Of a stretch of 64,000 bases of DNA, positions 5,867 to 56,855 are shown piece by piece. Within the stretch, counting starts at the first letter, position 1. Each line of letters begins with the position of its first letter. Under the pieces are notes generated by a model. The model saw nothing but the letters and a program-made list of their open reading frames with translations, had not been told where the DNA came from and did not search any database. Location of the stretch: the sequence record NC_061448.1; one strand, given 5' to 3'. Made by a program: the position numbers and the translations under genes.

Positions 5867-6688
5867 TTAATCACCTACCGCAGTATACCAGAAGTCCCAG
5901 CCAGCAGTGTTAGTGCCAGTAGACTTGATGGTGAACCCGCCTAACAGGGCGTTCTCATTCATCGCGCTTGTACCGTCCAGATTGTAGAGCTGGAAAGTCT
6001 TAGCTTGGTTGAGTGCAGCGTTCACGAATGTAATCTGAATGCTGATACAACGGTTGATGAATGCCGTGTTGAATACGACGTGAATCGTATCTGTAGTTGA
6101 CGCGTTCACGACTCGACCCATGTTATGAGTAAAGCCAGTGTTCATATCGCGGTTACTACCAATCCACGCGTTCGGGATAACTGCACCGGTCACAGGGTTA
6201 AGTGCTTGTGATACACGATACTCGTCGATAGCTGCATCACGACCAGGGCTACCCGTAGGACCAGTAGCGCCTGTAGGGCCAACAGAACCCGTGTTGCCGG
6301 TAGCACCGACAGGGCCTGTGTTGCCAGTAGGTCCGTTACGGCCACGCGGGCCACGAGGACCCGGGCAGCCGTCTGCACCGTCACGACCATCACGTCCGTC
6401 AGCACCAGGCAAACCACGTAGGCCATCTTTACCCTGCTTACCTTCACGCCCAGATTTGAGCTGGTCAGCAGTAGGAAGTCCTAAGACGCTTGACTGACTT
6501 CCATCAGGCCAGACGATAGTGAGTGTACCGGTAGTAGTATCGAACTCAGCACCCTGAGAGCCGGGAATCTTTGCAGCCTCTGTTGGGTCTATGAACTCAA
6601 CAGCGGACGCCGTCTTCTTACCTAACACCTTGCCGACGGGGTACGAACCGCCGTCGATAAGAGCAGGGCTAATCTTCGTAAGAGACAT
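5867..6688 (-). CDS. Collagen-like fibre protein (273 aa) with C-terminal beta domain
   Basis: 24 consecutive Gly-X-Y triplets after an FDTTTGTL...GLPT motif. Confidence 0.85.
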   Translation of the reverse strand: MSLTKISPALIDGGSYPVGKVLGKKTASAVEFIDPTEAAKIPGSQGAEFDTTTGTLTIVWPDGSQSSVLGLPTADQLKSGREGKQGKDGLRGLPGADGRDGRDGADGCPGPRGPRGRNGPTGNTGPVGATGNTGSVGPTGATGPTGSPGRDAAIDEYRVSQALNPVTGAVIPNAWIGSNRDMNTGFTHNMGRVVNASTTDTIHVVFNTAFINRCISIQITFVNAALNQAKTFQLYNLDGTSAMNENALLGGFTIKSTGTNTAGWDFWYTAVGD

Positions 6689-24895: not shown

Positions 24896-26659
24896 TTAAA
24901 ACGCTTTACGTTCAACATTTGAATATAAAGTTTCATACGGCTCAGAGTACAGTTCAGGACCGCGTTGAGCGCGTACAGTCACGTAACCAGTGTGACGGTT
25001 GAACGCAGTGATTTCGACTGTAGGCTGTTTAGGCTTGAGGGTCGCATAAATCGGAGCGTTAAGCGTTGGTTCGTCTGTCTGAATCTTATTTACAGATTGC
25101 AGCGCAGCACCAGACAGCGTTGGCAGCTTGAATCGCAGTTCAGCACGTTTCTGACCGAACGCAGCGCGAATCATACCGTTCTCTAACTGCACACCGTTCT
25201 GCTTGAGATACGCAGCGATGCGACGGCCGATACCAGTAAGCTGATCGCGAGTACGAGGGTCGAACGTACCTTCGAAGCTGATTGCTTCTGCTGGTTGACG
25301 CACAGACAGATGCAGGCCGGTATTGAAGTAGCCTTCGGTCAATAGACGCAGCACTTCTTTAACGACCTCTTTCGTGTTCTGACCGATAGCAGCAACGCGC
25401 AGTTCAGGCACGTCTACTTTCACAGGGTCACGCAGTTCAGTCTGGTTGTCCATGTAGCCGAGAGACACATGCTTCGCGTTGGTGTACGTATGCTGCAACA
25501 CACCAGTAGCGCGAATCAATACAGAGCCGCTCTTAGCGAGGTCATACAGTTCATCGCTGGTGGTTGTGCTGAACAGGTAGTAGTCTGTAGGCACTGCCAT
25601 GCGATTGACAGCTTCGACCGCTTTCGTCTGAACTTCTTTCACAGTCTTACCGAAGACAACACGACTACGGTTAGGCTGAGAAGCAGATACAGGGAAGAAC
25701 GCACCGTAGACAGCCTGCACGTTTTTCTTAATAGGCTGCTCAGAAGGAACCTTCTTGCCGCCCGCCAGTGGAGGCAGCTTAACGCCCACCAGCTTGCCTT
25801 TAACGATGTGCTTGTTCTCTTTGACAGGCTTGAGCGAGTCAACGAGTTTAGCCAGCGACGCACCATCAAGAATCTTCTCAAGCGGAACAACGAGGTTCTG
25901 CGGCAGATAGTGTTTCTTGCGATACGTATAGATGACGGTATCTTTCTTGATCTGCAAAGGCGTTGCCATATTGCGACCAACTACACCGACAGGCTGGAAC
26001 GTGTTTGCTTTGTCATCAGCGATTGAACCAAACTGTTTAGTGAACTCAGTCTGACCAATGATGTTAGCAACACGCAGATGACCACGAACGATAAACACAA
26101 TCTTCGGTTCATCTTTCAGGCGCAGCTCGTAACGGTCACGGTTCAGATAAACCATGCTGTACTTGTCGCCCTTCTCCAGCTCAAGGTCATACTCGTCGTT
26201 AGCATCATCGACAACGACTTTCTTACCCTGATATGTAACGTAAGTGCGAGCACCAGCAGACTCGGACGCAATCTCCATAGCCTTGCCAGTGTTAGACAGT
26301 GACGCTGCGAAGTCACGCACGGCTGGCATCAGATCGAATGAAGACGACACAGCATACGGTTCGCGCTTATCGCCCAGATGCAGATGCACAGCACTGGTGC
26401 TGGACATGAAGACGGTAGTACCTACATCTTCGTGCTTGCCAGCAAAGTTCATGCCGCTGATACGTTCGATGATGTTGGCATTCAGTGATTCGAAGCGAAC
26501 ATCGCTACCAGCAGCGAAGTCAAAGATTTCACCGTGACGCCAAGCATAGGCCACGTTGTTCGAACTAAGTCCGACAAACGCATCACCAATCTGACTGACG
26601 GTTAACGGCATGATACTCAAATCACGAATGATCGAGGACTGCTTTTTAATGAGGTTCAT
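24896..26659 (-). CDS. Hypothetical protein (587 aa), probable head-internal protein
   Basis: Long ORF; internal IASESA motif followed by a domain shared with three other proteins in the window. Confidence 0.7.
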   Translation of the reverse strand: MNLIKKQSSIIRDLSIMPLTVSQIGDAFVGLSSNNVAYAWRHGEIFDFAAGSDVRFESLNANIIERISGMNFAGKHEDVGTTVFMSSTSAVHLHLGDKREPYAVSSSFDLMPAVRDFAASLSNTGKAMEIASESAGARTYVTYQGKKVVVDDANDEYDLELEKGDKYSMVYLNRDRYELRLKDEPKIVFIVRGHLRVANIIGQTEFTKQFGSIADDKANTFQPVGVVGRNMATPLQIKKDTVIYTYRKKHYLPQNLVVPLEKILDGASLAKLVDSLKPVKENKHIVKGKLVGVKLPPLAGGKKVPSEQPIKKNVQAVYGAFFPVSASQPNRSRVVFGKTVKEVQTKAVEAVNRMAVPTDYYLFSTTTSDELYDLAKSGSVLIRATGVLQHTYTNAKHVSLGYMDNQTELRDPVKVDVPELRVAAIGQNTKEVVKEVLRLLTEGYFNTGLHLSVRQPAEAISFEGTFDPRTRDQLTGIGRRIAAYLKQNGVQLENGMIRAAFGQKRAELRFKLPTLSGAALQSVNKIQTDEPTLNAPIYATLKPKQPTVEITAFNRHTGYVTVRAQRGPELYSEPYETLYSNVERKAF

Positions 26660-27722: not shown

Positions 27723-28214
27723 TTAGGCAAATCGCCCACCACGCCATGCGGCCTTAATGAGCAATTTCGCCACGATTTCGTTCTTCATTGTCTTTCGCTT
27801 GGCGTTGCTTCTGACAAATGCAGAGCCGAACTTATTCACGACAATCAGACCACAACCGAGTTCTTTGATACGCTCGATAATGCGTTCGCCGTGAGATTCA
27901 AACAACTGTTCATCAATGATGAAGTACATACGCATACAGAAAGGCAAATACTTGTGCCACTTCTTATCGGTGTTGAAGTCTGCCCAGCAACTCTTTACCT
28001 CAGTGATAATCATATCGCATTTGGTATTCAGGCAGAACACGTCAGCCCTTAAGTTACCGTGCTTAATCAAACCGAGTTCGACGTGACATGAATAGCGTTT
28101 GTCAATCCAGTAGCGTTGTGCAGCTTCGGTGAGAAATGCCGTCTTATCAGGACGGCTCATTGATTTGAAAACAGCAGTCTGAATGGGTTCAGCTTTGCGC
28201 TGCTTATAGGCCAT
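27723..28214 (-). CDS. MmcB-like PD-(D/E)XK DNA repair nuclease
   Basis: ELGL...LRADVF.L.......EVKSCWADF..DKKW.KYL.FC..MYF is the MmcB-family pattern. Confidence 0.8.
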   Translation of the reverse strand: MAYKQRKAEPIQTAVFKSMSRPDKTAFLTEAAQRYWIDKRYSCHVELGLIKHGNLRADVFCLNTKCDMIITEVKSCWADFNTDKKWHKYLPFCMRMYFIIDEQLFESHGERIIERIKELGCGLIVVNKFGSAFVRSNAKRKTMKNEIVAKLLIKAAWRGGRFA

Positions 28215-28662
28215 ACGAGTCGATAATGTCCAGAGCCTGCTCTACGATAGGACGAAGTTTCTTGTCCACTTTACGCAGAGCTTTATCGGCTTTAAACCAT
28301 TTGCGTTCACGCGTCAGGGCTTCATCGTATTCAGTCAGCATAGTCTTGACTTTCATGATGAACCATTCAACGTGTTGCTCACGGCCGGTTTTGCCTTTGA
28401 CGTAACGCATAATGTCTACGAAGTCTTTCGGCTTACCGAGAACACCAGCTTCTTCCATTGCTTCTTTAAGCGCACTGTCGAGGGGCGTCATTCCTTTTTC
28501 GACTCCGCCTTTCGGCAGACCCCAGTTGCCAGCGTGAGTGGTGCGAATCAGCAGTAGCTCAATCGTACCATCACTTTTCTTTCTGTATGGAATAACGCCT
28601 GACTGCTTGCGAGGTTTCTTCTCGCTAGGCAGCTTGGCAGACAATGATACGTTGATCATCAT
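28204..28662 (-). CDS. NUDIX hydrolase (Ap4A/DIPP-like)
   Basis: WGLPKG and Nudix box GGVEKGMTPLDSALKEAMEEAG. Confidence 0.92.
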   Translation of the reverse strand: MMINVSLSAKLPSEKKPRKQSGVIPYRKKSDGTIELLLIRTTHAGNWGLPKGGVEKGMTPLDSALKEAMEEAGVLGKPKDFVDIMRYVKGKTGREQHVEWFIMKVKTMLTEYDEALTRERKWFKADKALRKVDKKLRPIVEQALDIIDSYGL

Positions 28663-29159
28663 AATGAATCGAGTCCCCGTGGCAGGTCAACATCCCACGA
28701 ACCAGCATTGTCTTTCCACAGGCCCTGATGTTGCAACTCTTTATACGCATCATAGAGAGTCACACGCGCTTGCGGAGAAAGCTCGTTCACGAATCCCGGC
28801 ATGTTGTACGAATACGAACAGCCCGGGAAGTATTGTAGACGACAGGATTCATACGTGTCAAACACGATACGACCTTCTTCGTCTGCAACCACTGAATGCG
28901 ATGCCATGCCACCCTGACCGAGAACAACAATCTCATAGTTAGGATGTTTGTTGTAGACACGTTGAATAAACTCGGCCGCTTCTGCAAACGGTCTTGCTAC
29001 TTGCGCAGCGCGATGACAGTTCTGTTCTACCGCAGACTCAGACAGAGAGCGAGCGCCAGTCAGATTCATAGCCGAGGCAAAGATAAGAGTAGCGAGCGAT
29101 TTAGGCTCGACGGCAGTGGGGAAAAACTTTGTGCCCCACGCTTGAGATAGCGAAAGCAT
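28659..29159 (-). CDS. Hypothetical protein (166 aa), possible papain-like Cys-His-Asp fold
   Basis: QNCH..A, SHSVV and FDT motifs; LSESA motif just before the NCH. Confidence 0.6.
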   Translation of the reverse strand: MLSLSQAWGTKFFPTAVEPKSLATLIFASAMNLTGARSLSESAVEQNCHRAAQVARPFAEAAEFIQRVYNKHPNYEIVVLGQGGMASHSVVADEEGRIVFDTYESCRLQYFPGCSYSYNMPGFVNELSPQARVTLYDAYKELQHQGLWKDNAGSWDVDLPRGLDSL

Positions 29160-39193: not shown

Positions 39194-39868
39194 TTAGTCC
39201 TCTACAATAACAAGCACAGGTCTAACTGCATCGTCGAACTTGAGGAACGTAGCACCAACCAGATAGCCACCATTCTCTACTTGCTTCACAACGGCTTTCT
39301 CATAGTCCGTTTCCCACTTCTCACGTTGATTAGGCTTGTAGCCCTCGAACGTTTCTGACGCATCGTAGTAGTTATACGTGCCGCCAGTTGGCATTGGGAT
39401 TCGAGCAAGGAACTCGATACGACCAGCGTTCTTAAACTTGGCCTTACGCAGTTCTTGAGTCAGCTTAGTGTTCTCAGCTTTCGAACCGGGAACAGCTTTG
39501 AATGGTTTCTTTGGTTGTGGTTCTTTAGGCGCAGCAGGGAGTTTCTCACGCGCTGGAGTGTTCTTGTCTGTCGCTTTCTTAATGCGAATGCCGGACACTG
39601 TACCAGTGAACGGACGACTGCGACCAAGCAACGAACGTGCTGTAGCAGCATCGACTTCAAACACTACTGACGGGTCATCCTTATGCAACACATAGAACTT
39701 GTTGCGCTTTGCAGCTTTGATACCGAAGACGTCTTTCTCCTCAATATCAGCTTCATGCTCCTTGTTCTCAATGCTTACCTTGCGCTTACCTTCGAAGCGA
39801 TACCAGTCACAGTCGAGTATCGAAGCAACAGGCAGCTTACGTGCGCTTTCGCTCAGTAGAATAAGCAT
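39194..39868 (-). CDS. Hypothetical protein (224 aa), probable head-internal protein
   Basis: Starts MLILLSESA; carries the shared W.(R/K)F.G...DVFGI domain. Confidence 0.7.
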   Translation of the reverse strand: MLILLSESARKLPVASILDCDWYRFEGKRKVSIENKEHEADIEEKDVFGIKAAKRNKFYVLHKDDPSVVFEVDAATARSLLGRSRPFTGTVSGIRIKKATDKNTPAREKLPAAPKEPQPKKPFKAVPGSKAENTKLTQELRKAKFKNAGRIEFLARIPMPTGGTYNYYDASETFEGYKPNQREKWETDYEKAVVKQVENGGYLVGATFLKFDDAVRPVLVIVED

Positions 39869-43286: not shown

Positions 43287-43688
43287 TTAGTCGTCGAGTC
43301 GTAAACGAATCAATGTAGAAGGGGCAGATGATTCGGATTCAACTGAATCGTCTTCATCATTAAGCTCGTCTTCCAATTCGTCTTCGTCTTCAACTTCCTC
43401 GTCGGAGTTGAGACTAATAACTTCGTCGTCATACAACGACTGTTCTTCCTCGGCATTAAGCTCTAAAGCAGCAGACAACGCGGCGACGGATTCAGCCATA
43501 CCGGACGCGCTACTCACAGAGTTTACCAAGCAAGAAGCCTGGAAGTTATCAGCGAGTTCGCATTCGAGAAAGTCCTCAGTGTCTGGTGCAACAGCCGCTT
43601 GAGCAAGCAAGCGAGCAGCATCAGTCCACTGTCCGTCACGCGCTGCGACGATTGCCAGTGCAGCTAAGGAACCAGATAAAGTCTTCAT
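43287..43688 (-). CDS. Small acidic head-associated protein (133 aa)
   Basis: Follows MCP; E/D-rich tail ending VESESSAP. Confidence 0.65.
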   Translation of the reverse strand: MKTLSGSLAALAIVAARDGQWTDAARLLAQAAVAPDTEDFLECELADNFQASCLVNSVSSASGMAESVAALSAALELNAEEEQSLYDDEVISLNSDEEVEDEDELEDELNDEDDSVESESSAPSTLIRLRLDD

Positions 43689-43705
43689 GCTTGGTCCTCA
43701 GTAGT

Positions 43706-43728
43706 GAGGGCAGCACTAAGCTACCCTC
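43706..43728 (-). promoter_or_regulatory. Stable hairpin after the MCP stop (mRNA stabiliser or attenuator)
   Basis: Minus strand GAGGGUAGC-UUAGU-GCUGCCCUC, 9 bp, no U-tract. Confidence 0.45.
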
Positions 43729-43741
43729 GTTGCACAGTCAA

Positions 43742-44839
43742 TTATCCACGGACCGCTTTTGCGACAGAACGCACGTTCGCCAGAGTGAAGGAGAAGGTGC
43801 TAGACAGCAACCAACCGCGGTCGGTGTTGCCCTGGTTCGCGCCGGAAGTCGGGGTAGACTGGGTGCCGCCACGAGTGGTGTACACTGCGTGGTAGTCCTG
43901 GTCTGCCAGAACGTACAGTTCGCCGTCTTGCAGAACGCGGTGCTCTGGAGCGCGGAAGCCGTCAGTTACCAGTTCCAGACCCAGCAGAGTACCCAGACGA
44001 CCAGTAGTGATCAGGTCGTATTTGCTTACCGGGTCCAGAGCAGAGGAGAACTGATCGTTACCAACGATATCGTTCCAGTAGTCCTGCGCCATCACAGCGG
44101 TGCTAACAGGCAGCGGCCATGAAGACACAGAATTTTTCAGAGTAGACAGCAGACGCGGAGTCAGGTCACCGTGAACCCAGGTGATAGGGTTAGCGATGCC
44201 AACAGCCTGATCACAAGCACGTTTCCACAGACGGTCTTCTGCAACCATGATAGAAGACAGGCCGTCTTGCTGTGCACGGTCCAGCAGGTCACCGTTGATC
44301 TGATCCAGATCCATTTTGCTGACGCGGATGTTGGATTTCAGTTCAAACTCAGCAGGCGTGAACACACGACCGCGGAACTGGCGGTAACCGTAGTCGGTAG
44401 GACCGGTTGCCATGATCGCTTCTGCCTGGTGGATTTTCAGTTCGATACGAGCGATATCGCCTTGACGAACAGTAGCGCCTTTACACACTTTGCGCAGCAG
44501 GCCAGCACGTTCAGCACGGTCTTCGATAGATGCAACGATAGATGCACCCAGGGAAGCCCACTTCTCACCGCTGCTATCAGCAACAGCTTCTTGGAACAGC
44601 TCGATTTTCTCAGCTTCTGACAGCGGGTTCGCAGCAGAGGTAGAGTGAACCAGTTCGCCGGTCTGGAAGCTGGACATCAGCTTGCTGATTTGACCCAGCA
44701 GATCTTTTTGCGAGTAGGCGTTGATTTCGCCGGTGCTTTCGCTCAGTGCCAGATCGCCTTTCCCGCCAAAACGCAGGTCTTCAATAGGCGCGCCGTTACG
44801 CAGAGTTACTTTAGCGCCGCGCATTAAGGAATTGTTCAT
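43742..44839 (-). CDS. Major capsid protein (365 aa)
   Basis: Position after scaffold and decoration genes; HK97-like pattern (RKVC....V.QG, EDRLW, MAQDYWNDI, GRLGTLLGLELVTD); strong RBS; codon usage looks highly expressed by eye. Confidence 0.85.
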   Translation of the reverse strand: MNNSLMRGAKVTLRNGAPIEDLRFGGKGDLALSESTGEINAYSQKDLLGQISKLMSSFQTGELVHSTSAANPLSEAEKIELFQEAVADSSGEKWASLGASIVASIEDRAERAGLLRKVCKGATVRQGDIARIELKIHQAEAIMATGPTDYGYRQFRGRVFTPAEFELKSNIRVSKMDLDQINGDLLDRAQQDGLSSIMVAEDRLWKRACDQAVGIANPITWVHGDLTPRLLSTLKNSVSSWPLPVSTAVMAQDYWNDIVGNDQFSSALDPVSKYDLITTGRLGTLLGLELVTDGFRAPEHRVLQDGELYVLADQDYHAVYTTRGGTQSTPTSGANQGNTDRGWLLSSTFSFTLANVRSVAKAVRG

Positions 44840-44898
44840 TAGTTGCTCCTGAGAATAATCTCGTAAGTTTCAGTTCAAACAGTTACGGTGCGCGACGA

Positions 44899-45621
44899 TT
44901 AGGCGCCGTAAGAGGAAGACATTTCGATGATCAGGTAACCACGTTCAGTGGTAGGTGCCTGTTTGATCACGCAGCCTTTAAGCACAGTACCGGTTCCGCC
45001 GATAGTCAGCAGACCGTTCGGGCCGAGAGTTGGGTGAATCACGTTGTCAGCAGACCAGTCAGCAGTCGGGTCAAACATAGAGGTAGCGATGTTACCCAGT
45101 TTGATGTAACCACAACGGCCTTCAACGTTAGAAGCCAGGCCACCGATAGGAGCATCAGCAGTGTAAGAACGCGCTTCGGTCACAGACAGTTCGTAAGCAT
45201 ACTGGATGCGAACTTTCTTGCCAATGTCGTCAGCGTGGAAGAACAGGTCTGCACCCTGCACACCGACTGCGCCAGCTTCGGAAGGAGCTGCGTTAGCTTC
45301 CTGATCCGCTTTAACGCCGTCGATTTTAACCAGCAGTGCGCCAGCGTCAGGAACGCGGGAAGCAGTGAATTTTTTGGTCGCGTCGATAACGAACTCTTCA
45401 ACACGGTTCATGTGCGCAGGCGGCATAGAGCGAGCCAGGGCGAAACCGGCGAATACTTCGTTAGCAGCACCAGTAGACAGACGCAGGAAAGAGTGACCGC
45501 CTTCGCGAGCCCAAACCAGTGCGACGCCTTCTTCGTGGATTACTTCGCCCGGCAGCAGGTCAGCTTCCTGGGTCTGTACGATATCGGTAGCGTTTTGAAA
45601 CAACATAATCAGTTTCTCCAA
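44899..45621 (-). CDS. Head structural / decoration protein (240 aa)
   Basis: Between scaffold and MCP; codon usage similar to MCP by eye. Confidence 0.55.
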   Translation of the reverse strand: MEKLIMLFQNATDIVQTQEADLLPGEVIHEEGVALVWAREGGHSFLRLSTGAANEVFAGFALARSMPPAHMNRVEEFVIDATKKFTASRVPDAGALLVKIDGVKADQEANAAPSEAGAVGVQGADLFFHADDIGKKVRIQYAYELSVTEARSYTADAPIGGLASNVEGRCGYIKLGNIATSMFDPTADWSADNVIHPTLGPNGLLTIGGTGTVLKGCVIKQAPTTERGYLIIEMSSSYGA

Positions 45622-45658
45622 TAAGAGAGATTAGGAATTAAACTGTCACAGGCCGCAA

Positions 45659-47695
45659 TTACATGCGGCGCAGGCGAGCAAGTTTATCTTCATACGAGGA
45701 GCCAGTGGAAGCTGAACTCTGGGATTCAACAGTGTCGTTACCCTGAGTAAGCAGTTCAGCAGCGGATGCCGGAGCTTTAGGCTGCGCGGTTACAACCTGC
45801 TGTTGAACAACCGATGCGCGTTCAGCACTCACGGTGCCGGCTGCTGCGTCGATTGACTCAGAGATTTCGTTCTGGGCGACTTCGGACTTGCTCATGAGGT
45901 CCATCGCTTTTGACAGCGAAGTAGTCAGGAAGTCTTTGCCGTGTGCAATGAACGCACGTTCAACCAGAGCGCGAGGCTCTTTGATGCCAGCAGCAGACAG
46001 AGAGTTGCACAGGCTATCAACGATTGGGTTGCGTACATCGCCCCAGAAGTTTTTCGTAACACCCAGCTGGGATGCAGACAGGGCAGCGACGAAGCGTTCA
46101 GTATAAGCTGAGGTTGCTTCTTCGATAGTGCCTGTAACGTTCGCGGTAGCTTCGCTAACACGAGCGTCAGACTGCGCAGCCAGAAGTTTTTCGACAGGCA
46201 TTTCGATCTGATACGGCATAAAGCCGAATGCTTCACAAGTACCAGTCACACCAGTCTGATTCAGAGAGTGTGATACTGCACGAATGAAATTATCAGTTGC
46301 GAAGGATTTCACCGCATTTTCTTCGCCAACTGCATTAGATACAGAAGCGAGAGTAGCGCGAGCAATCGGGTGACCGTCGTAATACATGTGAACGGTTTCC
46401 AGCTTGCCAGTTGCGCGGCTCAGAGCTACCAGAGCAGGGTCCAGTGTGCCGTGTTGAGCTTGCGCGGTAGACAGGCTGTCGAAGGTGCGAGAGACAACGC
46501 CGCTTTCAGAATCAATGTCGTCCTCGTCATCGAGGTCGAGATCGTCTTCTTCCAGATCTTCTTCGTCGTCGAACTCGTCGTCTTCGTCAGAGCTGGATTC
46601 AGAGTCGATATCCTCTTCATCGTCCAGGTCTTCGTCATCGAGATCTTCTTCGTCGAAGTCTTCGTCGTCTTCCTCGTCGTCGCCGGAAGCGGATTCAGAA
46701 TCGAAGTCTTCGTCTTCGTCATCTTCTTCCAGATCTTCCAGGTCTTCGTCGTCCAGATCATCTTCATCCAGATCTTCGTCGTCGAGGTCGTCTTCGTCGT
46801 CAATGTCATCATCTTCATCGTCGTTGGACGATTCAGAATCGAAGTCTTCGTCCTCGTCGTCCGAATCATCTTCGTCGTCGAGGTCGTCTTCTTCAATGAT
46901 GTCAATGTCGCTATCGTCGTCGCCGGACTGAGATTCAATCGGCTCGTCGACCAGAGCGGCAGAACAGTGCGCACAGAACACAGGCTCTTCATCAGAGCTT
47001 ACAGTGAACGGCTGGTCGCAGTTAGCGGAGCAGCTATACATGTGCGCTTCGACTTCACCGTCAGCAGAGGACAGCGCGGCCAGAGCTTCTGGAGCTTCCT
47101 GCGCTTCGCAATTCTCTACAGCTTGACCGGTGTACGGGTCGAAGTTTACGGCAGTAGCAGCGTTGAAGCTACCAGTACCAGACAGCGCGGTGAACGCGTG
47201 TGCGTTGCTCAGTGCCAGAGCGAAGTTGCGTTGAGCAGCTTCGGCAGTTTCACCAGTAGCAACCAGACCGGCGTGTTCAATCTGTTCGTCAGCAGAAGCG
47301 GATTCGGCCAGGAACTGAGTTACGCGGTCGTCAGTGATTTCTGACAGGTCAGCAGAGCACGATGGGCAGCAGCCCTGAACCAGTGCAGCAGAGTCAGAGA
47401 TAACGTGGCTACCACAACCATCAAGACAGATGGTGTAATGAGCTTTCACGTCACCGGCAGCAGACTGCGACTGGACTTCGGCGCGCTCAACCAAATCAGG
47501 ATGCTCTTCCAGCAGTTCTTCACCGCCTTTCGGATTGTAGAGGTCTGTGCCACTTTGCGAAGCAAAGCCTACACCATCAGAGGACCCGAAAATCATCAGG
47601 TTCTGACCGGTTGCAGTGCGGCGAAAGTTCTCTACTGCCTGATTATGGTTTTGACCGACACACAGGATACCCGCGAGTTGGGTAATCTTTGGCAT
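45659..47695 (-). CDS. Prohead scaffold-like protein with Zn-binding motifs and a long acidic tract (678 aa; start revised to MPKIT)
   Basis: CLDGC/CPSC and CSANC/CAHC pairs; D/E tract; repeated S-[EQ]-S; position upstream of MCP. Confidence 0.65.
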   Translation of the reverse strand: MPKITQLAGILCVGQNHNQAVENFRRTATGQNLMIFGSSDGVGFASQSGTDLYNPKGGEELLEEHPDLVERAEVQSQSAAGDVKAHYTICLDGCGSHVISDSAALVQGCCPSCSADLSEITDDRVTQFLAESASADEQIEHAGLVATGETAEAAQRNFALALSNAHAFTALSGTGSFNAATAVNFDPYTGQAVENCEAQEAPEALAALSSADGEVEAHMYSCSANCDQPFTVSSDEEPVFCAHCSAALVDEPIESQSGDDDSDIDIIEEDDLDDEDDSDDEDEDFDSESSNDDEDDDIDDEDDLDDEDLDEDDLDDEDLEDLEEDDEDEDFDSESASGDDEEDDEDFDEEDLDDEDLDDEEDIDSESSSDEDDEFDDEEDLEEDDLDLDDEDDIDSESGVVSRTFDSLSTAQAQHGTLDPALVALSRATGKLETVHMYYDGHPIARATLASVSNAVGEENAVKSFATDNFIRAVSHSLNQTGVTGTCEAFGFMPYQIEMPVEKLLAAQSDARVSEATANVTGTIEEATSAYTERFVAALSASQLGVTKNFWGDVRNPIVDSLCNSLSAAGIKEPRALVERAFIAHGKDFLTTSLSKAMDLMSKSEVAQNEISESIDAAAGTVSAERASVVQQQVVTAQPKAPASAAELLTQGNDTVESQSSASTGSSYEDKLARLRRM
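46500..46930 (-). repeat. Low-complexity Asp/Glu-coding tract with four (F/I)DSES units
   Basis: Plus strand tcgtc/tcttc trinucleotide-like repeats; FDSESS, FDSESA, IDSESS, IDSESG. Confidence 0.85.
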
Positions 47696-47740
47696 GGTTA
47701 AAACCCTCATAGAATTTATAGTCGTTGAATCGACAGGTTG

Positions 47741-47748
47741 AAATTAAC
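47741..47748 (-). promoter_or_regulatory. Variant candidate late promoter GTTAATTT
   Basis: One mismatch to GCTAATTT; 46 nt upstream of the revised scaffold start. Confidence 0.45.
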
Positions 47749-47773
47749 GATTGCAGAAAAAATTCAGGTATTT

Positions 47774-48907
47774 TTAAATTTTTCTGCTATCAATGTCAGT
47801 TTGTGGAATATATCTGTTTTCGAAGTATTTCGCTACTACCTCGACGCCGTTTAGCGTATAAACGTTGCGTAAGCTATATCCCCAAACCATCAGTTCGGCA
47901 AGCGTTGCGAAGTGCTCTGCGGGTACTGATTTAATGGTCAACGCGTTCATAGAATCCGGGTGGATTTTCTTACCGCGAATGGCCTGTTCGAACTTCATAC
48001 GGTCTACGTTACGCAGCATCGTATGGTCCACAAAGTGGGCTAATTCGTGCGTAATAACGTGTGCCATACTCAGGCTATTATAACCGCCAAGTAACTGTAC
48101 TAACTGCGCTGGATGGATTGAAATAGCACCATACAGGAAGCCGTGTACGCGATACGTTGCGATGTGACTACCACCACTATCCGAGTTAGCTTTTAACAGG
48201 CCAACATACAGACGTTTAAATGGCAGTTCAAAGTTCAGGCCGATGCCCGGCATAACGTTTTCCTGAATGTCTTTGAGCACATAATCAGGAGGGCTAATAC
48301 CGTTCTTTTCAAGCGTGACGCCCGGAACACGCAAATCATCCATGCCCAGTATTTCGAGATGCACACGACCACACTTAGGAACAGGCTTGGTGGCGTAGTT
48401 ATTAGGCGTACCACCCGGATAGATTGCTGAGGCATACTGCAATGGTTTGAAATTACCAAAATCAGGCATATCCATTAAACGACGCTGTGCCGCTTTCATC
48501 GAGTCAGGCGTGTCTTCCCCAGGACGATCATCGTTGCCAGTTGCTATAGGCGCAGGCTTAGACTCAGGCTCCGGTTCTTTCTCAAGTTTAACAGGCTTGG
48601 GTTCTGGTGCTGGTGGCGCAGGCTTCTTCTGCTTCTCCTCGTAAGGAGTGAAGTCGAAGTCAGGCTTAAAGAGAGCGTCAGGTTTCGCAGTGAATGGGCG
48701 ACTGTTCTGAACGAGCTTGTCACCGTCTTCTCCACTGATTGCATATGCCTGATCGTATTTAGGATGGGCTATGTAGTACAGGTCGTCGCTTACTTTGAGA
48801 AGGCCAATGACCTCGCGCGATTCCATATGGACACCGTTTGAGATCATTGCCGCTTGACCCAGATAGCGATAGTACGTGTAGTCCCCTATAGCTAAACCTT
48901 CTGGCAT
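47774..48907 (-). CDS. Zincin-like metallopeptidase (HExxH) with shared N-terminal domain (377 aa; start revised to MPEGL)
   Basis: VITHELAHFVDH and EHFATLAE; TGATG coupling to the protease stop. Confidence 0.7.
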   Translation of the reverse strand: MPEGLAIGDYTYYRYLGQAAMISNGVHMESREVIGLLKVSDDLYYIAHPKYDQAYAISGEDGDKLVQNSRPFTAKPDALFKPDFDFTPYEEKQKKPAPPAPEPKPVKLEKEPEPESKPAPIATGNDDRPGEDTPDSMKAAQRRLMDMPDFGNFKPLQYASAIYPGGTPNNYATKPVPKCGRVHLEILGMDDLRVPGVTLEKNGISPPDYVLKDIQENVMPGIGLNFELPFKRLYVGLLKANSDSGGSHIATYRVHGFLYGAISIHPAQLVQLLGGYNSLSMAHVITHELAHFVDHTMLRNVDRMKFEQAIRGKKIHPDSMNALTIKSVPAEHFATLAELMVWGYSLRNVYTLNGVEVVAKYFENRYIPQTDIDSRKI

Positions 48908-49686
48908 CAGGCCATCCTTAACAGATGTTCTTTGTAAGTTGCAGCACACGCGAACGCTGGGTCATCTACGCTACTGCACTCGAAGCCGGTAAGCATCTTG
49001 CAGTCACGGTACACCAGACGGCCTGTACGCGCATCGAGGAACGTTGGTTTGTTGAACGCTGTGTGCGAACAGAAGTTACGCATCTTAGGCGTTACCAACT
49101 GACCACAGATACTGCATTTATACGCACGGTACGTTGTGCCTTTGCTGTACGTGTTCAGTTCACCACTCAGGATTCGGTCGCAGCGCTCTTTACAACGCGT
49201 ACGGTCGAATGCAAGCAGCAGAGTAAGACGCGCGTGATCGCCACGGAAGTTCTTGAGCTTGGACAGATTGCTGTCGAAGATCATACCCATAGCCTGACGG
49301 TAGTCTTTGTTGTTGTGCTCGATGAACGTCGGCTTACCAATGAACGTCTGATAAGCAAGACGGCCTTGGTCAGGGTTGAACGTTAACCACTCTTGCAGAC
49401 TAAACGCATCACCGTTAGTGTTCGGCAGTTCAGTGATGTTCACCGGAACCGGAACGATGATATAGTCGCGGATATCGCGTGACGTGTTGTACTGCTCGGC
49501 TGCTTTAGGCAACCACACGTTCACGTCAAGGTTAAAGGAGCCTGTCTGAATACCGAAGCGAGAAGCATCCACACGAATAGATTTAGCTGTACGGCTAACA
49601 TCTTCCTTGTGCATGTCAATCGCGTTCAATCCGACGAGGCCCATGTCTGACGTATCAAACGATTCAGACTTTACTGACTGGGTCAT
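48907..49686 (-). CDS. Prohead (capsid maturation) protease, HK97/assemblin-like fold with Zn ribbon (259 aa; start revised to MTQSV)
   Basis: NTNGDAF, TFIGKPTFIEHN, YSKG...YKCSICG..C.H, FECSSVDDPAF; GGGAG RBS. Confidence 0.75.
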   Translation of the reverse strand: MTQSVKSESFDTSDMGLVGLNAIDMHKEDVSRTAKSIRVDASRFGIQTGSFNLDVNVWLPKAAEQYNTSRDIRDYIIVPVPVNITELPNTNGDAFSLQEWLTFNPDQGRLAYQTFIGKPTFIEHNNKDYRQAMGMIFDSNLSKLKNFRGDHARLTLLLAFDRTRCKERCDRILSGELNTYSKGTTYRAYKCSICGQLVTPKMRNFCSHTAFNKPTFLDARTGRLVYRDCKMLTGFECSSVDDPAFACAATYKEHLLRMA

Positions 49687-50120: not shown

Positions 50121-50999
50121 TTAACCTCGCAATGCACCACGCGCCCATGACTTAGCGAGGGCCAGAGTCATACGAGCAGGGTTGTGCAACTTGACTTCAC
50201 CTTTATGAACAGCAGTGAATGGTTCATGCGCGTTCTCACTGCGACCAGAGCGATAGGCAGCTTCGTTGAAACCATCGAACAGAGTAACTACCCAGCCCGT
50301 AGATTTCTCAGAGCATTCGCCACACGCTTTATCCCACGCAATCTTACCGCACACACGACCACCAGCATTAACTGCGTAGCTGATTTGCTCAGTGCCTTTA
50401 TAAATGTCAGGGGACTTGATGGTCTTGAACGTAACACGCGATGCAGACTCAGAGCGAGGAACCATCTTCTCTTTCAGGGCTTCAACATCCAGTGAAGACC
50501 AGAACGATTCAAACAGCGCTGCAAACTTTTGTTCGACAGGCAGATTGATTGCATTGATTTGCGCGATAGTGCTGGAGCTATCGTTGAGTACTCGGTTGAT
50601 GAAGTACCCGCCGATAATCACAGGCATCTGTGTGACCTGTGCGCCAGTAGTCAGTCCAGCTTTCTTACAGTAGATTTCAGACAGACCGATAGCAAGACGC
50701 GCAAGAGTCATGAACGTTTGCTTCTCGGTCGAGTTAGCGATCTCCGTGTAGATACGCGCAGCGATTGCAGGGACGACAGTACGCTTTGCCACACTCAGAA
50801 TATCTTCCGGTGTGATTGACTGACCGAGCTTCTTACGCGCGGCCAGTTCGAAGGCGTTAATCAGGCTTGCTTTGTTCGCTGGCGTCAACGACTCCCCTAA
50901 CTTGATAGTCGTCTGCTCGGAGCTGCTCACTATGCTCGGAGCTGGAGCTGTCTTGAGTCTCTTCACCCCCGACGTTGACTTCATTCGCTGTACTGTCAT
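50121..50999 (-). CDS. Hypothetical protein (292 aa; start revised to MTVQR), probable head-associated
   Basis: AGGA RBS before ATG 50999; RSESAS motif. Confidence 0.65.
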   Translation of the reverse strand: MTVQRMKSTSGVKRLKTAPAPSIVSSSEQTTIKLGESLTPANKASLINAFELAARKKLGQSITPEDILSVAKRTVVPAIAARIYTEIANSTEKQTFMTLARLAIGLSEIYCKKAGLTTGAQVTQMPVIIGGYFINRVLNDSSSTIAQINAINLPVEQKFAALFESFWSSLDVEALKEKMVPRSESASRVTFKTIKSPDIYKGTEQISYAVNAGGRVCGKIAWDKACGECSEKSTGWVVTLFDGFNEAAYRSGRSENAHEPFTAVHKGEVKLHNPARMTLALAKSWARGALRG

Positions 51000-52104
51000 T
51001 TGTTTGTTCCTGAGTAACAGGCTGCATGTGTTGCAACAGCCCAGAGTTCTGAATTGCCTCATTCAAATCTTCACCACGATGAATGGTGAGTTGAGCGAGG
51101 TAGTTGAGAGCAGGTTCAACCATACCGAGATTACGACAGCCCCAATAAGCTGTTTCGTAACATAGGTCTAAATTAATAGAGGTCTGGTCAAACAAGAAAC
51201 TTTTTGGATTCTGCTTGGCCGCGTCAATACCCTGAATAGCCATGCCGGTAGCATTAATCATATCGTCATGACGATAGAAGATGTCGGCGAGCATCCCATA
51301 GCACTCAATGCGATCAGGGCGGAACGCTATCGCACGATAACAGGCTGCGATAGATTCCTGAGTGAACCCCTGCTTGAATGTCGCTTTCGCCAGCTCGATG
51401 TTAGCGAGTGCAACGTAGTCAGCCCACTTCGCAATACCAGCAAGGCGATCTACTTCACGACGAGCATCATCCAGCAGGTCAGCACGTTCGTGATAGCTCA
51501 CAGCATAGCAGAGTTCACGCGCATAGTAGAAGCTGCAACGATCATCGTGCGGGTAATCACCCACGTCCTTACCAAGCTCAAGCAGATAACCGCGAGGCTT
51601 TGTGTGGTCAGGGTAATGGTCAGTTGCAAACGTTGCGTCTACAGTACGCAGTTGCTGGCCAGGCTTACGAGAAGACAGGACTTCATGCGCACGATACTTC
51701 CAGAAGTAAGAGCGACGACGATACGCTTTCATCTGCTGGTAGTGACTGTCACCGTTGCGCATCAGAATCCAAACTGCTTCGGCGTGCTTAATGTGTTTCG
51801 TACCGCGTAACGTTTCAACCCAGTTAGGGTCATCGAAGCGTTCATCAATATCGAGCCACACAACGAGGTCGTCCTCGGAGAACGGCGTAGCGGCCAGCTC
51901 ACGACTTGCGCCCAGATTACGTTCTTCTGATACGTCGAACATGTGATACAGGTTAGGGTGCGTGAACGCCGAGATGATGTTCGTGGTCTGGTCTTCGCTG
52001 CCAGTGTCAACGATACTAATCGCATCAGCGCCAGCAACATGCTTCAACCACTCACCGATATTCTTTTCTTCATTACGGTAGATAGCCGCTACGCAGATTC
52101 TCAT
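50857..52104 (-). CDS. Glycosyltransferase family 2 with C-terminal TPR-like repeats (415 aa)
   Basis: ICVAAIYRNEE...IVDTGSEDQT, DXD motif WLDIDE, RAHE, TPR-like FYYAREL and AIAFRPDRIECY. Confidence 0.88.
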   Translation of the reverse strand: MRICVAAIYRNEEKNIGEWLKHVAGADAISIVDTGSEDQTTNIISAFTHPNLYHMFDVSEERNLGASRELAATPFSEDDLVVWLDIDERFDDPNWVETLRGTKHIKHAEAVWILMRNGDSHYQQMKAYRRRSYFWKYRAHEVLSSRKPGQQLRTVDATFATDHYPDHTKPRGYLLELGKDVGDYPHDDRCSFYYARELCYAVSYHERADLLDDARREVDRLAGIAKWADYVALANIELAKATFKQGFTQESIAACYRAIAFRPDRIECYGMLADIFYRHDDMINATGMAIQGIDAAKQNPKSFLFDQTSINLDLCYETAYWGCRNLGMVEPALNYLAQLTIHRGEDLNEAIQNSGLLQHMQPVTQEQTNDSTANEVNVGGEETQDSSSSEHSEQLRADDYQVRGVVDASEQSKPD

Positions 52105-55025: not shown

Positions 55026-56855
55026 TTAACTGGCGATAGGGTCTTTGTTGACAGGGAAGTCTTCGGTCATGTCGAGCACACGATTGAACAGCTTAGGTGC
55101 CATGTCTTTCACATGTTCCGCATAATCGAAGAGGTTCTGTTTACGCGCACGGTTCACACGCACCTGACGTACTTCATCAGGGCTGTTTGTAATGTCGTAC
55201 AGCGTATAGATGACGATGTTATCAGAGGTCGAGTGCGTACTAACTCGGACGATAACCCAATCACGATTGAGCTTCGCATCTGCCTTGAATTTAAGCACGT
55301 CGCCTTCTTCTGCTTCCTCAGCGCGGTGTTGAGGAGTAGATTTGTTGGCAGCAGCAATCTTCTTGGCAGTCTCTTTCGCTTCCTGCTCTGCGGCAGCAAC
55401 GTCAGAGTCCGTGTCTTCGTCAGCTTCGGTTTCGTCTACAGCGTCAGAGGCGTCAGCGGATTCATCCTCCTCCGAATCCTCGTCTTCTCCATCTTCATCT
55501 TCGCTATCAGCTCCTTCGTCGTCAGCGGCGTCATCATCCACAGATTCGTCGTCTGCGTCTGAATCGGTGTCCCCATCATCTGCATCATCAGCATCTGGAT
55601 CGCTATCGTCAGTGTCTTCTTCTGCATCAGGGTCTTCCTCTTCTTCGACAGGTGCAGCGGCTTTCTTACCGGCCTTAGCACGAACTTTCTTAGGAGGCAC
55701 GTCTTCTTCGTCCTCTTCTGGCTCGTCAATGTCTGACAGGTCCAGAGCAGGTTCGTCATGGTCCTGCGAATCATCGCCACCAAACAGAGAACCTATAGAG
55801 TCTTCGATGTTAAACGCATCGCCAGCGAACGGGCTACGTGCAAGAATATCTTCGAGCTTCTGCTCGTCGAGGTCCGCGTCGATTTCGACTTCTTCGATTT
55901 CATCATCCAAGATTTCTTCCTCGATTACACGAATACGCTTGCCACGTTTATCAACACCGTCTTCGTAGACAGTACGCACTTCTGGCTTATCGATCTCAAC
56001 TTCACCAGAACGCACTTTCTTACGCAGCGAACTAAGCTCGGACTCTCGTTCGTGCTTCTTCTTGTTCGCTTCTTTCTGTAGCTCTTTGCGTTGCTGCTTC
56101 TGCTCCAGAATTTTGGCGTTGTTCGCAAGGCGTTGGGCTTCCTGTTCTTCCTCAGCAGAACGACGACGAGCACGACGCACTACGCGACGATATGCTTTAA
56201 CGTCATCAGCAGTCAGAACACCTTTCGGCCAATCGTTGAACGGCAGGATGTTGGTGTCATGTACAATCAGGTCGTATTGAGCATCATCGACTTTAAGGAA
56301 CATACCCTCAGAGTTAATGACGATACCACCTTTGCCTGGGCGCATGAAGCGCACACCAATCATGTCGTTCTTGTATAGCTTGGTCATACCCTTAGAGGTC
56401 TTCACAGGGTATTCAGGGCTTGCAACCATACGCCACTGATAGTTGTCGAAGTTAACGCCGTACACCGACTCAGATGGAACACGACGCGGCGAGAAGCGGG
56501 CAGCATCGAACTGACTGCGGTTGAGTTGACGTTCCATCGTCTTAGCACCAGCAGTCTTAGTGCGGCCAGCAGTCTCACGATTAACAACGTCAGGTACTTT
56601 GCGCAACTTCGATGCACGTTCCATCAGGAACAGGCCAGCAGCTTTGTCGAGTGGGAAGTCAACATGCGGCATATCAGGGAAAATCAGAGTGTAGCGTCCG
56701 CCATTACGCAGCGGGAGAATACCGAAGATATCACCTTCACGAATCATGCGCTTATGAGTTCGTTGGGATACTTCTTTTCCGCGTGAACCTGTATACTTCA
56801 TCCACGCGTACTTCGATACGGCATCGCTATAGGATGCAGATACGGAAAGTACCAT
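55026..56855 (-). CDS. Acidic protein (609 aa; start revised to MVLSV) with two copies of the shared domain, a coiled coil and a D/E tract
   Basis: ORF track; long D/E-rich region; N-terminal LSVSAS. Confidence 0.7.
   Translation of the reverse strand: MVLSVSASYSDAVSKYAWMKYTGSRGKEVSQRTHKRMIREGDIFGILPLRNGGRYTLIFPDMPHVDFPLDKAAGLFLMERASKLRKVPDVVNRETAGRTKTAGAKTMERQLNRSQFDAARFSPRRVPSESVYGVNFDNYQWRMVASPEYPVKTSKGMTKLYKNDMIGVRFMRPGKGGIVINSEGMFLKVDDAQYDLIVHDTNILPFNDWPKGVLTADDVKAYRRVVRRARRRSAEEEQEAQRLANNAKILEQKQQRKELQKEANKKKHERESELSSLRKKVRSGEVEIDKPEVRTVYEDGVDKRGKRIRVIEEEILDDEIEEVEIDADLDEQKLEDILARSPFAGDAFNIEDSIGSLFGGDDSQDHDEPALDLSDIDEPEEDEEDVPPKKVRAKAGKKAAAPVEEEEDPDAEEDTDDSDPDADDADDGDTDSDADDESVDDDAADDEGADSEDEDGEDEDSEEDESADASDAVDETEADEDTDSDVAAAEQEAKETAKKIAAANKSTPQHRAEEAEEGDVLKFKADAKLNRDWVIVRVSTHSTSDNIVIYTLYDITNSPDEVRQVRVNRARKQNLFDYAEHVKDMAPKLFNRVLDMTEDFPVNKDPIAS

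Follow-up and report, generated by a model that had tools for sequence, protein, structure and literature searches.

The head-maturation proteases of T4 (gp21) and phiKZ cleave after glutamate (Glu), and herpesvirus assemblin cuts between alanine (Ala) and serine (Ser). Type I signal peptidase follows a rule of small residues at P3 and P1. The SPN3US protease gp245 cuts after A-X-E, with valine preferred at P4 and Ser at P1', and a targeting role is cited for the propeptides of T4 (PMC10052503). Here we analyze a stretch of 64,000 nucleotides (hereafter the window), identical at 100% to bases 62001-126000 of Erwinia phage pEa_SNUABM_1 (NC_061448.1, 266,939 bp, Alexandravirus), in which a short peptide built on Ser-x-Ser recurs in head proteins and at protein N-termini. 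The phage belongs to the PaBG/Lu11 group, named 'Lupandier' (PMC7412058). Every gene of the window lies on the minus strand, and the order of the head module, from the putative protease gp144 to the major capsid protein (MCP) gp140, is syntenic across all relatives:

48907..49686, minus strand: gp144, head maturation protease, 259 amino acids, PHROG 18299
47774..48907, minus strand: gp143, two KMPT-N stretches (Pfam PF20294) and an HExxH peptidase motif, no leader
45659..47695, minus strand (longest open reading frame, ORF, to 47710): gp142, scaffold-like acidic protein, 678 amino acids, between the protease and MCP genes
44899..45606, minus strand: gp141, virion structural protein, PHROG 16710
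43742..44839, minus strand: gp140, MCP with HK97 fold, 365 amino acids, PHROG 2522

The best explanation of the peptide, in which we place moderate confidence, is a head-protease maturation code read on small residues, combined with T4-like targeting leaders. Our inferences on cleavage, on the bond and the enzyme involved and on targeting are as follows. gp144, probably a Ser/His (histidine) enzyme of the T4 gp21/assemblin fold, would recognize hydrophobic-x-Ser-x-Ser plus a small residue and would most likely cut after the second Ser, with Ser at P3 and P1 and Ala, Ser, glycine (Gly) or threonine (Thr) at P1'. gp142 would be cut to about ten pieces able to exit the prohead, the MCP would lose a propeptide of 35 or 68 residues, the portal would be trimmed by about 55 residues, and the protease would have its own N-terminus removed. 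Furthermore, short leaders of two kinds, with 8-9 and about 17 residues, would be clipped from the non-homologous proteins gp121, gp134, gp150, gp177, gp175, gp185, gp195-198 and gp251, and probably would also bring their bearers into the prohead, like the capsid-targeting sequence of T4. Alternatively, the peptide might be cut behind its first Ser, which would put the hydrophobic residue at P3, as is the case in T4.

With the cut placed after the second Ser, the locus resembles T4 in having the protease gene beside the scaffold and capsid genes, in the predicted fold of gp144, whose best, though weak, match is gp21 (5jbl), in a core predicted to be fragmented at many sites, and in unrelated proteins that carry short N-terminal leaders ending in the protease consensus. 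It differs in that P1 is Glu in T4 whereas P1 here would be Ser, or Ala in sister lineages; gp144 lacks a sequence-level match to the gp21 family and has an additional cluster of cysteine (Cys) and His, and two distinct leader types are present. The systems of phiKZ gp175 and SPN3US gp245 likewise come from jumbo myoviruses whose many processed head proteins (predicted here) include the portal and MCP. They share with this one N-terminal propeptides of widely differing lengths and, in the case of SPN3US, a small P3 and a P1' that is preferably Ser there and small here. However, P1 is Glu there, the short propeptides have 20-24 residues there versus 8-17 here, and pEa_SNUABM_1 sits in the unrelated 'Lupandier' group. 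Herpesvirus assemblin, too, is a Ser/His protease, weak Foldseek matches suggest that it shares the fold class of gp144, and its Ala/Ser bond is the A-x-A-S form found in the scaffolds of Lu11, PaBG, L018 and L021; but the fold match of gp144 to assemblin is weaker than that to T4 gp21, with homology not demonstrated, and P3 is hydrophobic there whereas P3 is small here, with the hydrophobic residue at P5. Finally, signal peptidase I also reads two small residues flanking a free position, then a small residue, but the leaders here are 8-17 residues long without a hydrophobic core of membrane length, and sites also lie within cytoplasmic head proteins.

The initial annotation had described the peptide as S-[EQ]-S followed by a small residue, and every occurrence that it listed is present in the minus-strand translations. 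gp142 holds eight copies of S-[EQ]-S-[ASGT], and single copies lie in gp140 (residues 33-36), gp139, gp134 (6-9), gp117 (132-135), gp122 and gp146, with variant forms at the N-termini of the protease gp144, the NUDIX hydrolase gp121 and gp150 (609 amino acids). To these we add a second MCP site, VHSTS/A (residues 64-69), and two gp142 sites, VISDSA and FDSLST. The sites of gp142 are as follows (a slash marks the predicted cut):

47549..47566, minus strand: FASQS/G, with S-x-S at the matching position in orthologues
47459..47476, minus strand: VQSQS/A, kept in Yoloswag and JA11
47387..47404, minus strand: VISDS/A, kept in Yoloswag and JA11, added here
46922..46939, minus strand: IESQS/G, conserved
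46826..46843, minus strand: FDSES/S, conserved
46688..46705, minus strand: FDSES/A, from the motif scan
46592..46609, minus strand: IDSES/S, from the motif scan
46499..46516, minus strand: IDSES/G, from the motif scan
46466..46483, minus strand: FDSLS/T, kept in 6 of 6 enterobacterial-clade orthologues, added here
45713..45730, minus strand: VESQS/S, the C-terminal site, conserved; Lu11 and PaBG read A-x-A-S there

Since gp142 is rich in Ser (10.6%) and in aspartate (Asp) plus Glu (25%) and contains short-period codon repeats, its sites could be an artefact of composition or duplication, that is, Ser- and acid-rich low complexity with recent repeats. Per-protein shuffles give 0.4 expected copies of S-[EQ]-S-small in gp142 versus the 8 observed, the sites are not on any long DNA repeat unit, for which reason we rejected an origin in DNA tandem repeats, and both enrichment and conservation of the motif extend beyond gp142 and into unrelated families. 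Proteome-wide counts covered the whole genome, taken in seven pieces that were analyzed separately. With gp142 removed, 20 copies are observed versus 9.0 expected (2.2-fold), and 10 versus 2.4 once the pattern also demands a hydrophobic residue two places ahead of the first Ser; the reversed motif and the T, A, G, D/N and K/R analogues have observed-to-expected ratios of 0.5-1.0. By gene block, the ratio is 3/0.4 in the head module without gp142 and 11/3.0 in the other minus-strand genes, with no clear excess in the tail, baseplate and fibre block (1/2.1) or among plus-strand genes (5/3.5). The proposed enrichment therefore holds for head and late genes and not for tail or early genes; the initial annotation had set a lack of enrichment in head proteins as a refuting outcome, and that outcome does not occur. 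Chance recurrence of the motif is excluded, and the artefact, largely refuted by the shuffles, the proteome enrichment and the three-phage conservation described below, is the least probable of the explanations considered. At the motif sites both Ser codon families are in use, and therefore selection acts on the peptide.

Orthologues were aligned from Y3, Yoloswag, pEa_SNUABM_5, fHe-Yen9-02, JA11, Lu11, PaBG and phiRSL1, and the metagenomic relatives L018, L019, L021, L022 and L023 were compared as well (the L020 sequence stops short of the capsid genes). Orthologues retain both Ser, and the position between them may hold E, Q, K, S, A, V, T, L, M or H; E/Q is thus a local preference that does not define the motif. 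Of the initial annotation's reading, a recurrent, selected peptide in head proteins and at N-termini, resembling a protease consensus plus targeting tag, has stood, and the definition by S-[EQ]-S has given way to Ser-x-Ser. From the alignments, the unit is hydrophobic-x-S-x-S-small, to which the hydrophobic residue two positions upstream belongs. In a comparison of pEa_SNUABM_1 (named SNU1 in this test) with Yoloswag and JA11, both relatives kept 27% of S.S[small] sites, versus 5-11% for the controls T.T, A.A, S..S and SS, with only G.G as high as 25%; 17 of the 20 conserved S.S[small] sites lie in head-module or leader-bearing proteins.

Four independent families (protease, MCP, portal and scaffold) have the two fixed Ser and the free middle residue. 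In the portal, 99 of the 120 homologues, whose identity reaches as low as 46%, have S.S[small] within their first 70 residues, at a density of 1.32 per 70 residues versus 0.30 elsewhere in the protein, and in the sequences inspected hydrophobic-x-S-x-S directly precedes a Gly-rich linker and the conserved core. The protease carries its N-terminal site, VKSES/F (residues 5-10; 49657..49674, minus strand), in a position where S-x-S-[FL] occurs in the first 40 residues of 43 of 70 homologues versus 23 of 360 control windows, with thirteen different middle residues (forms SESF, SHSF, SQSF and SKSF among them). About ten sites are at matching positions in the six enterobacterial-clade orthologues of gp142, and the scaffold of L022, whose protease is 48% identical, has six hydrophobic-x-SES sites.

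In sister lineages both Ser give way to Ala. The scaffold homologues of Lu11, PaBG, L018 and L021 have few or no S-x-S sites; A.A[small] is enriched in those of L018 (14 versus 3.6 expected) and L021 (20 versus 6.1), and the A.A[small] sites of all four are mostly A-x-A-S. In addition, BLASTP aligned the leader end A-K-A of the PaBG protein gp83 with the leader end S-E-S of gp196, and the MCP site of Lu11 reads S-S-A where that of the window reads S-E-S. Since A-x-A with Ser behind it gives the same Ala/Ser bond that herpesvirus assemblin cuts, a cut after the second small residue is suggested. The replacement of Ser by Ala at both positions speaks for a pocket suited to small side chains and against a modification that depends on a hydroxyl. 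The latter would make S-x-S a sequon for phosphorylation, given that the acidic FDSES context resembles a kinase site, or for O-glycosylation by gp147, a GT2 glycosyltransferase whose gene (window 50857-52104, minus strand) is in the head module of every relative examined. With the hydroxyl acceptor gone at aligned positions, and the hydrophobic N-terminal leaders fitting a sequon poorly, we rejected this reading as highly improbable. Strict co-variation of the protease N-terminal S-x-S-F with the scaffold type was also considered and fails, as L018 and L021 have the protease S-x-S but A-x-A-S scaffolds. The putative scaffolds of L019 and L023, picked by position only, have neither motif form, and the capsid-gene assignment of L023 is doubtful.

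The MCP carries two candidate sites:

44732..44749, minus strand: site 1, ALSES/T (residues 31-36), compared across 119 homologues
44633..44650, minus strand: site 2, VHSTS/A (S68/A69), in a linker of the model

The gp140 model matches the HK97 and D3 capsids in Foldseek with E-values of 1e-10 to 1e-11. At site 1, S33 is kept in 80, S35 in 83 and T36 in 92 of 119 homologues, with position 34 variable. At site 2, residues 68-70 are the sole internal segment of the AlphaFold model (mean predicted local distance difference test, pLDDT, 84.9) with pLDDT below 50, and lie between the N-terminal helix (44-60) and the HK97 core. A cut at S68/A69 would remove 18.6% of the MCP; site 1 alone would remove about 10%. 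For processing and virion content, the experimental anchors come from PaBG only, whose virion proteins are proteolytically processed and whose MCP is about 20% lighter than predicted (PMC7412058). The corresponding PaBG site, A-P-S/A (residues 69-72, counted by eye), has a predicted loss of 19.3%. In Foldseek gp140 aligned over 270-300 columns to mature HK97-type capsid proteins, and residue 38 of the phage G MCP aligns to residue 109 of the window MCP; both fit a mature MCP start near residue 70. The phage G paper does not give the cleavage site.

The leaders form the second part of the proposed code. Across the whole proteome, S-x-S-A starts within the first 16 residues in 12 cases versus 3.6 expected (p = 2e-4), and five control patterns are not enriched there. 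Two leader types are found on at least 11 proteins, and most terminate in S-x-S-A, the same S-x-S-small unit as in the gp142, MCP and portal sites. The type 1 leader, 8-10 residues long, consists of Met, a stretch of one to four residues, then one or two that are hydrophobic, and S-x-S-A; it occurs on gp121, gp134, gp150, the SNF2 helicase gp177, gp195 and the long ORF of gp197. The type 2 leader has about 17 residues, starts M-x-L-I-K and occurs on gp196, gp198 and gp251, with a variant form on gp175. The leaders are portable, as gp196 and gp198 are similar only within residues 1-18 (E = 3e-5). The Yoloswag and JA11 orthologues of gp175, gp177, gp185, gp197, gp134 and gp150 keep them, and gp134 has S-x-S-A in all six genera, its middle residue being E, A, V or T (LSESA, ISASA, ISVSA, LSTSA, VSVSA). 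The leader of gp121 is retained in 5 of 6 genera and lost in JA11; that this NUDIX hydrolase is packaged into the capsid is plausible from its leader. The main bearers are:

39194..39868, minus strand: gp134 (224 amino acids), 8-residue leader followed by a KMPT-N Pfam domain (residues 20-84)
39842..39868, minus strand: gp134 leader, MLILLSES/A, with a Shine-Dalgarno sequence upstream
28204..28662, minus strand: gp121, NUDIX hydrolase
28636-28662, minus strand: gp121 leader, MMINVSLS/A
55026..56855, minus strand: gp150 (609 amino acids)
56835-56855, minus strand: gp150 leader, MVLSVS/A, followed by KMPT-N (residues 16-80)
L002 35762-41614, minus strand: gp177, SNF2-type helicase of 1950 amino acids, type 1 leader

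The M-x-L-I-K leader bearers, the otherwise dissimilar gp196, gp198 and gp251 together with the PaBG virion protein gp83, are at the loci L004 6825-7862 and 8478-8816 (minus strand) and L004 47223-48860 (plus strand), and L009 16203-17165; gp117 and gp110 likewise start M-x-L-I-K. For gp197 (L004 7874-8476, minus strand), the longer ORF opens with the type 1 leader MQIYVSLS, as in the JA11 and Yoloswag orthologues, and this leader ends S-L-S-R; the RefSeq start is probably too far downstream.

In PaBG, 14 virion bands were identified, among them a helicase-like protein of 221 kDa and gp83 of 35 kDa (PMC7412058). The helicase-like protein, 1969 residues long according to its gene, is orthologous to gp177 and starts with a leader ending S-L-S-A; being the largest virion band, it indicates that the giant helicase appears to travel in the particle. 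PaBG gp83 begins with a type 2 leader, and gp81, the PaBG orthologue of gp141, is present in virions. A counterpart of gp142 is not among the 14 bands.

It should be noted that small residues at P3 and P1 also recall signal peptidase I, and that gp143 has an HExxH motif and a gene between those of the protease and the scaffold, so that not gp144 but this zincin-like neighbour, or an enzyme of the host, might cut the sites. We hold this to be very unlikely. A gp143 homologue was not found at the head-module loci examined in Lu11, PaBG and phiRSL1, though the Lu11 and PaBG scaffolds have A-x-A-S, whereas gp144 homologues exist in Lu11 and phiRSL1; the leaders are too short and too polar for signal peptides, and gp144 has a site at its own N-terminus. 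The zincin motif of gp143, the second peptidase of the head module, reads HELAH; its pEa_SNUABM_5 orthologue is annotated 'peptidase family M34', and Pfam gave a weak M57 match only.

Cleavage by gp144 itself is suggested by its sequence and fold. H124 and S181, about 55 residues apart, are invariant in 44 homologues and are inferred from this conservation to be the catalytic residues. The AF2 (AlphaFold2) model has a pLDDT of 84.2, and its three best Foldseek matches are T4 gp21 chains (5jbl), followed below by weak matches to the proteases of Kaposi's sarcoma-associated herpesvirus (KSHV), pseudorabies virus (PRV) and Epstein-Barr virus (EBV). On the strength of the model, gp144 likely belongs to the gp21/assemblin fold class; its family label comes from PHROG alone. 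At residues 191-208 gp144 also has a zinc-ribbon-like insert, a Cys/His cluster (C191, C194, C206, H208) that is invariant or nearly so in the 44 homologues, and we know of no such insert in other gp21-type proteases. At its C-terminus (residues 243-259; window 48907-48960, minus strand), A-C-A-A stands at 246-249 with A248 invariant, and model confidence collapses from 246; this is possibly a self-processing site of the Ala type, to judge by the residues.

The position of gp142 between the protease and capsid genes and its acidic composition fit a phage scaffolding or core protein. Its RefSeq/PHROG label 'ATPase' is unsupported, with neither a Walker A motif nor a Pfam match in the protein. 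In its N-terminal half (window 46960-47440, minus strand) there are two four-Cys clusters, at residues 90-113 and 222-244 in the 678-residue numbering, which orthologues keep; MYSCS/A is part of a Cys cluster and was set aside as a site.

A number of observations weigh against a Ser-type head-protease code. In the proteome-wide ranking of patterns S.SA is only 25th of 8000, and conserved S-x-S is also found in the DNA ligase and in one baseplate-region protein. The fold match of gp144 to 5jbl is weak (probability 0.75-0.82, E 0.05-0.1, template modelling (TM) scores 0.33-0.35 and 0.48-0.50), and neither the single sequence nor an 8-sequence profile gave a Pfam or Protein Data Bank (PDB) sequence match, only spurious zinc-finger matches. 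The gp142 homologue of phiRSL1, ORF134, has no enrichment of S-x-S or A-x-A. Downstream of MCP site 1, G37 (117 of 119 homologues), E38 (111), N40 (116) and A41 (116) are more conserved than the Ser, so that this block could be structural, and the mass shift of the PaBG MCP agrees with site 2 and not with site 1. Literature searches found no cleavage, mass spectrometry or N-terminal sequence data for pEa_SNUABM_1 or its close relatives (Y3, AD1, the JA phages and the SNUABM phages). Lastly, to our knowledge the gp21-type relatives in T4, phiKZ and SPN3US all cut after Glu.

As for phiRSL1, ORF134 (L008 9458-11086, plus strand) has a thrice-repeated unit of about 8 residues containing Thr-His; lacking both motif forms and having this repeat instead, the lineage may use a different signal.

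That Glu occupies P1 in every characterized phage enzyme of the gp21 fold, together with the near invariance of G37 and E38 in the MCP, raises the question of whether the protease here also cuts after Glu, S-x-S only accompanying the true sites (Gly-Glu after MCP site 1, Glu within SES). We regard this as quite unlikely, as Glu is the middle residue at only a minority of orthologous sites, the leaders VSLSA, ISVSA and VSVSA are without any Glu, and Gly-Glu is not enriched in the gp142 translation by inspection. Alternatively, S-x-S could be a conserved docking or assembly peptide that binds the scaffold core, the portal or the protease and is itself uncleaved, a view in line with the conservation of the MCP site 1 block well past the Ser and of the leaders as entire peptides. 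This is the strongest of the competing explanations and still an unlikely one: about ten copies lie in acidic, otherwise poorly conserved spacers of gp142, the motif sits in flexible linkers, as cleavage sites do (MCP 68-70 and the Gly-rich segment before the portal core), and PaBG proteins do undergo processing (PMC7412058).

The remaining matches in the window are of mixed standing. The initial annotation had seen only non-matching SESY and SQSL in tail and baseplate proteins, which is not quite so, given the matching SQSS of the tail fibre gp105; the others include one, in gp122, that we rejected because it is kept only in the close relative Y3 and is probably due to chance:

43287..43688, minus strand: gp139 (133 amino acids), with a C-terminal VESES/S at 43326-43343 that is loosely conserved among orthologues
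50121..50888, minus strand: gp146 (255 amino acids, given as 292 in the initial annotation), with PRSES/A at 50442-50459; orthologues retain S-[EL]-S-A
24896..26659, minus strand: gp117 (587 amino acids), with an internal IASES/A at 26255-26272, directly before KMPT-N (139-201)
29031..29048, minus strand: SLSESA of gp122 (166 amino acids), judged a chance match
6488..6505, minus strand: DGSQSS of the tail fibre gp105, judged a chance match in a tail block without overall enrichment

In gp117, as in gp134 and gp150, the site stands directly ahead of the KMPT-N domain. Elsewhere in the genome, gp182 (266 amino acids; L002 44185-44985, minus strand) adjoins the head-tail connector gene and has three S-x-S-small sites, all kept in Yoloswag and JA11, which makes it a candidate second core protein or processed head protein. 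Directly upstream of the portal gene, gp005 (L007 5358-5573, plus strand) has two hydrophobic-x-S-x-S-small units (residues 14-19 and 23-28); at only 71 amino acids, its label 'DNA ligase' is implausible.

Taken together, these observations allow a broader but tentative proposal, which we hold with less than even confidence: in the clade of PaBG, Lu11 and Alexandravirus, a protease of the gp21/assemblin fold may have shifted from Glu to Ser/Ala, and the leaders may load enzyme cargo for delivery with the DNA. This cargo would comprise the NUDIX hydrolase, the 1950-residue SNF2 helicase and several KMPT-N peptidase-type proteins, with the two portable leaders of 8-17 residues as address label. 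Our literature search did not find a publication describing a Ser-x-Ser consensus, and homologues are present in many metagenomes, down to 34-46% identity. Confirmation of the cuts would give a large clade of jumbo phages, widespread in the environment, its first prohead-protease consensus. Phage enzymes of the gp21 fold would then not be limited to Glu at P1, and their specificity would be linked to that of the herpesvirus assemblins. The masses of the mature capsid and portal proteins could be computed, and head cargo could be deduced directly from the genome: the NUDIX enzyme, the giant helicase and about a dozen proteins without an assigned role would be predicted to be capsid-internal and possibly ejected.

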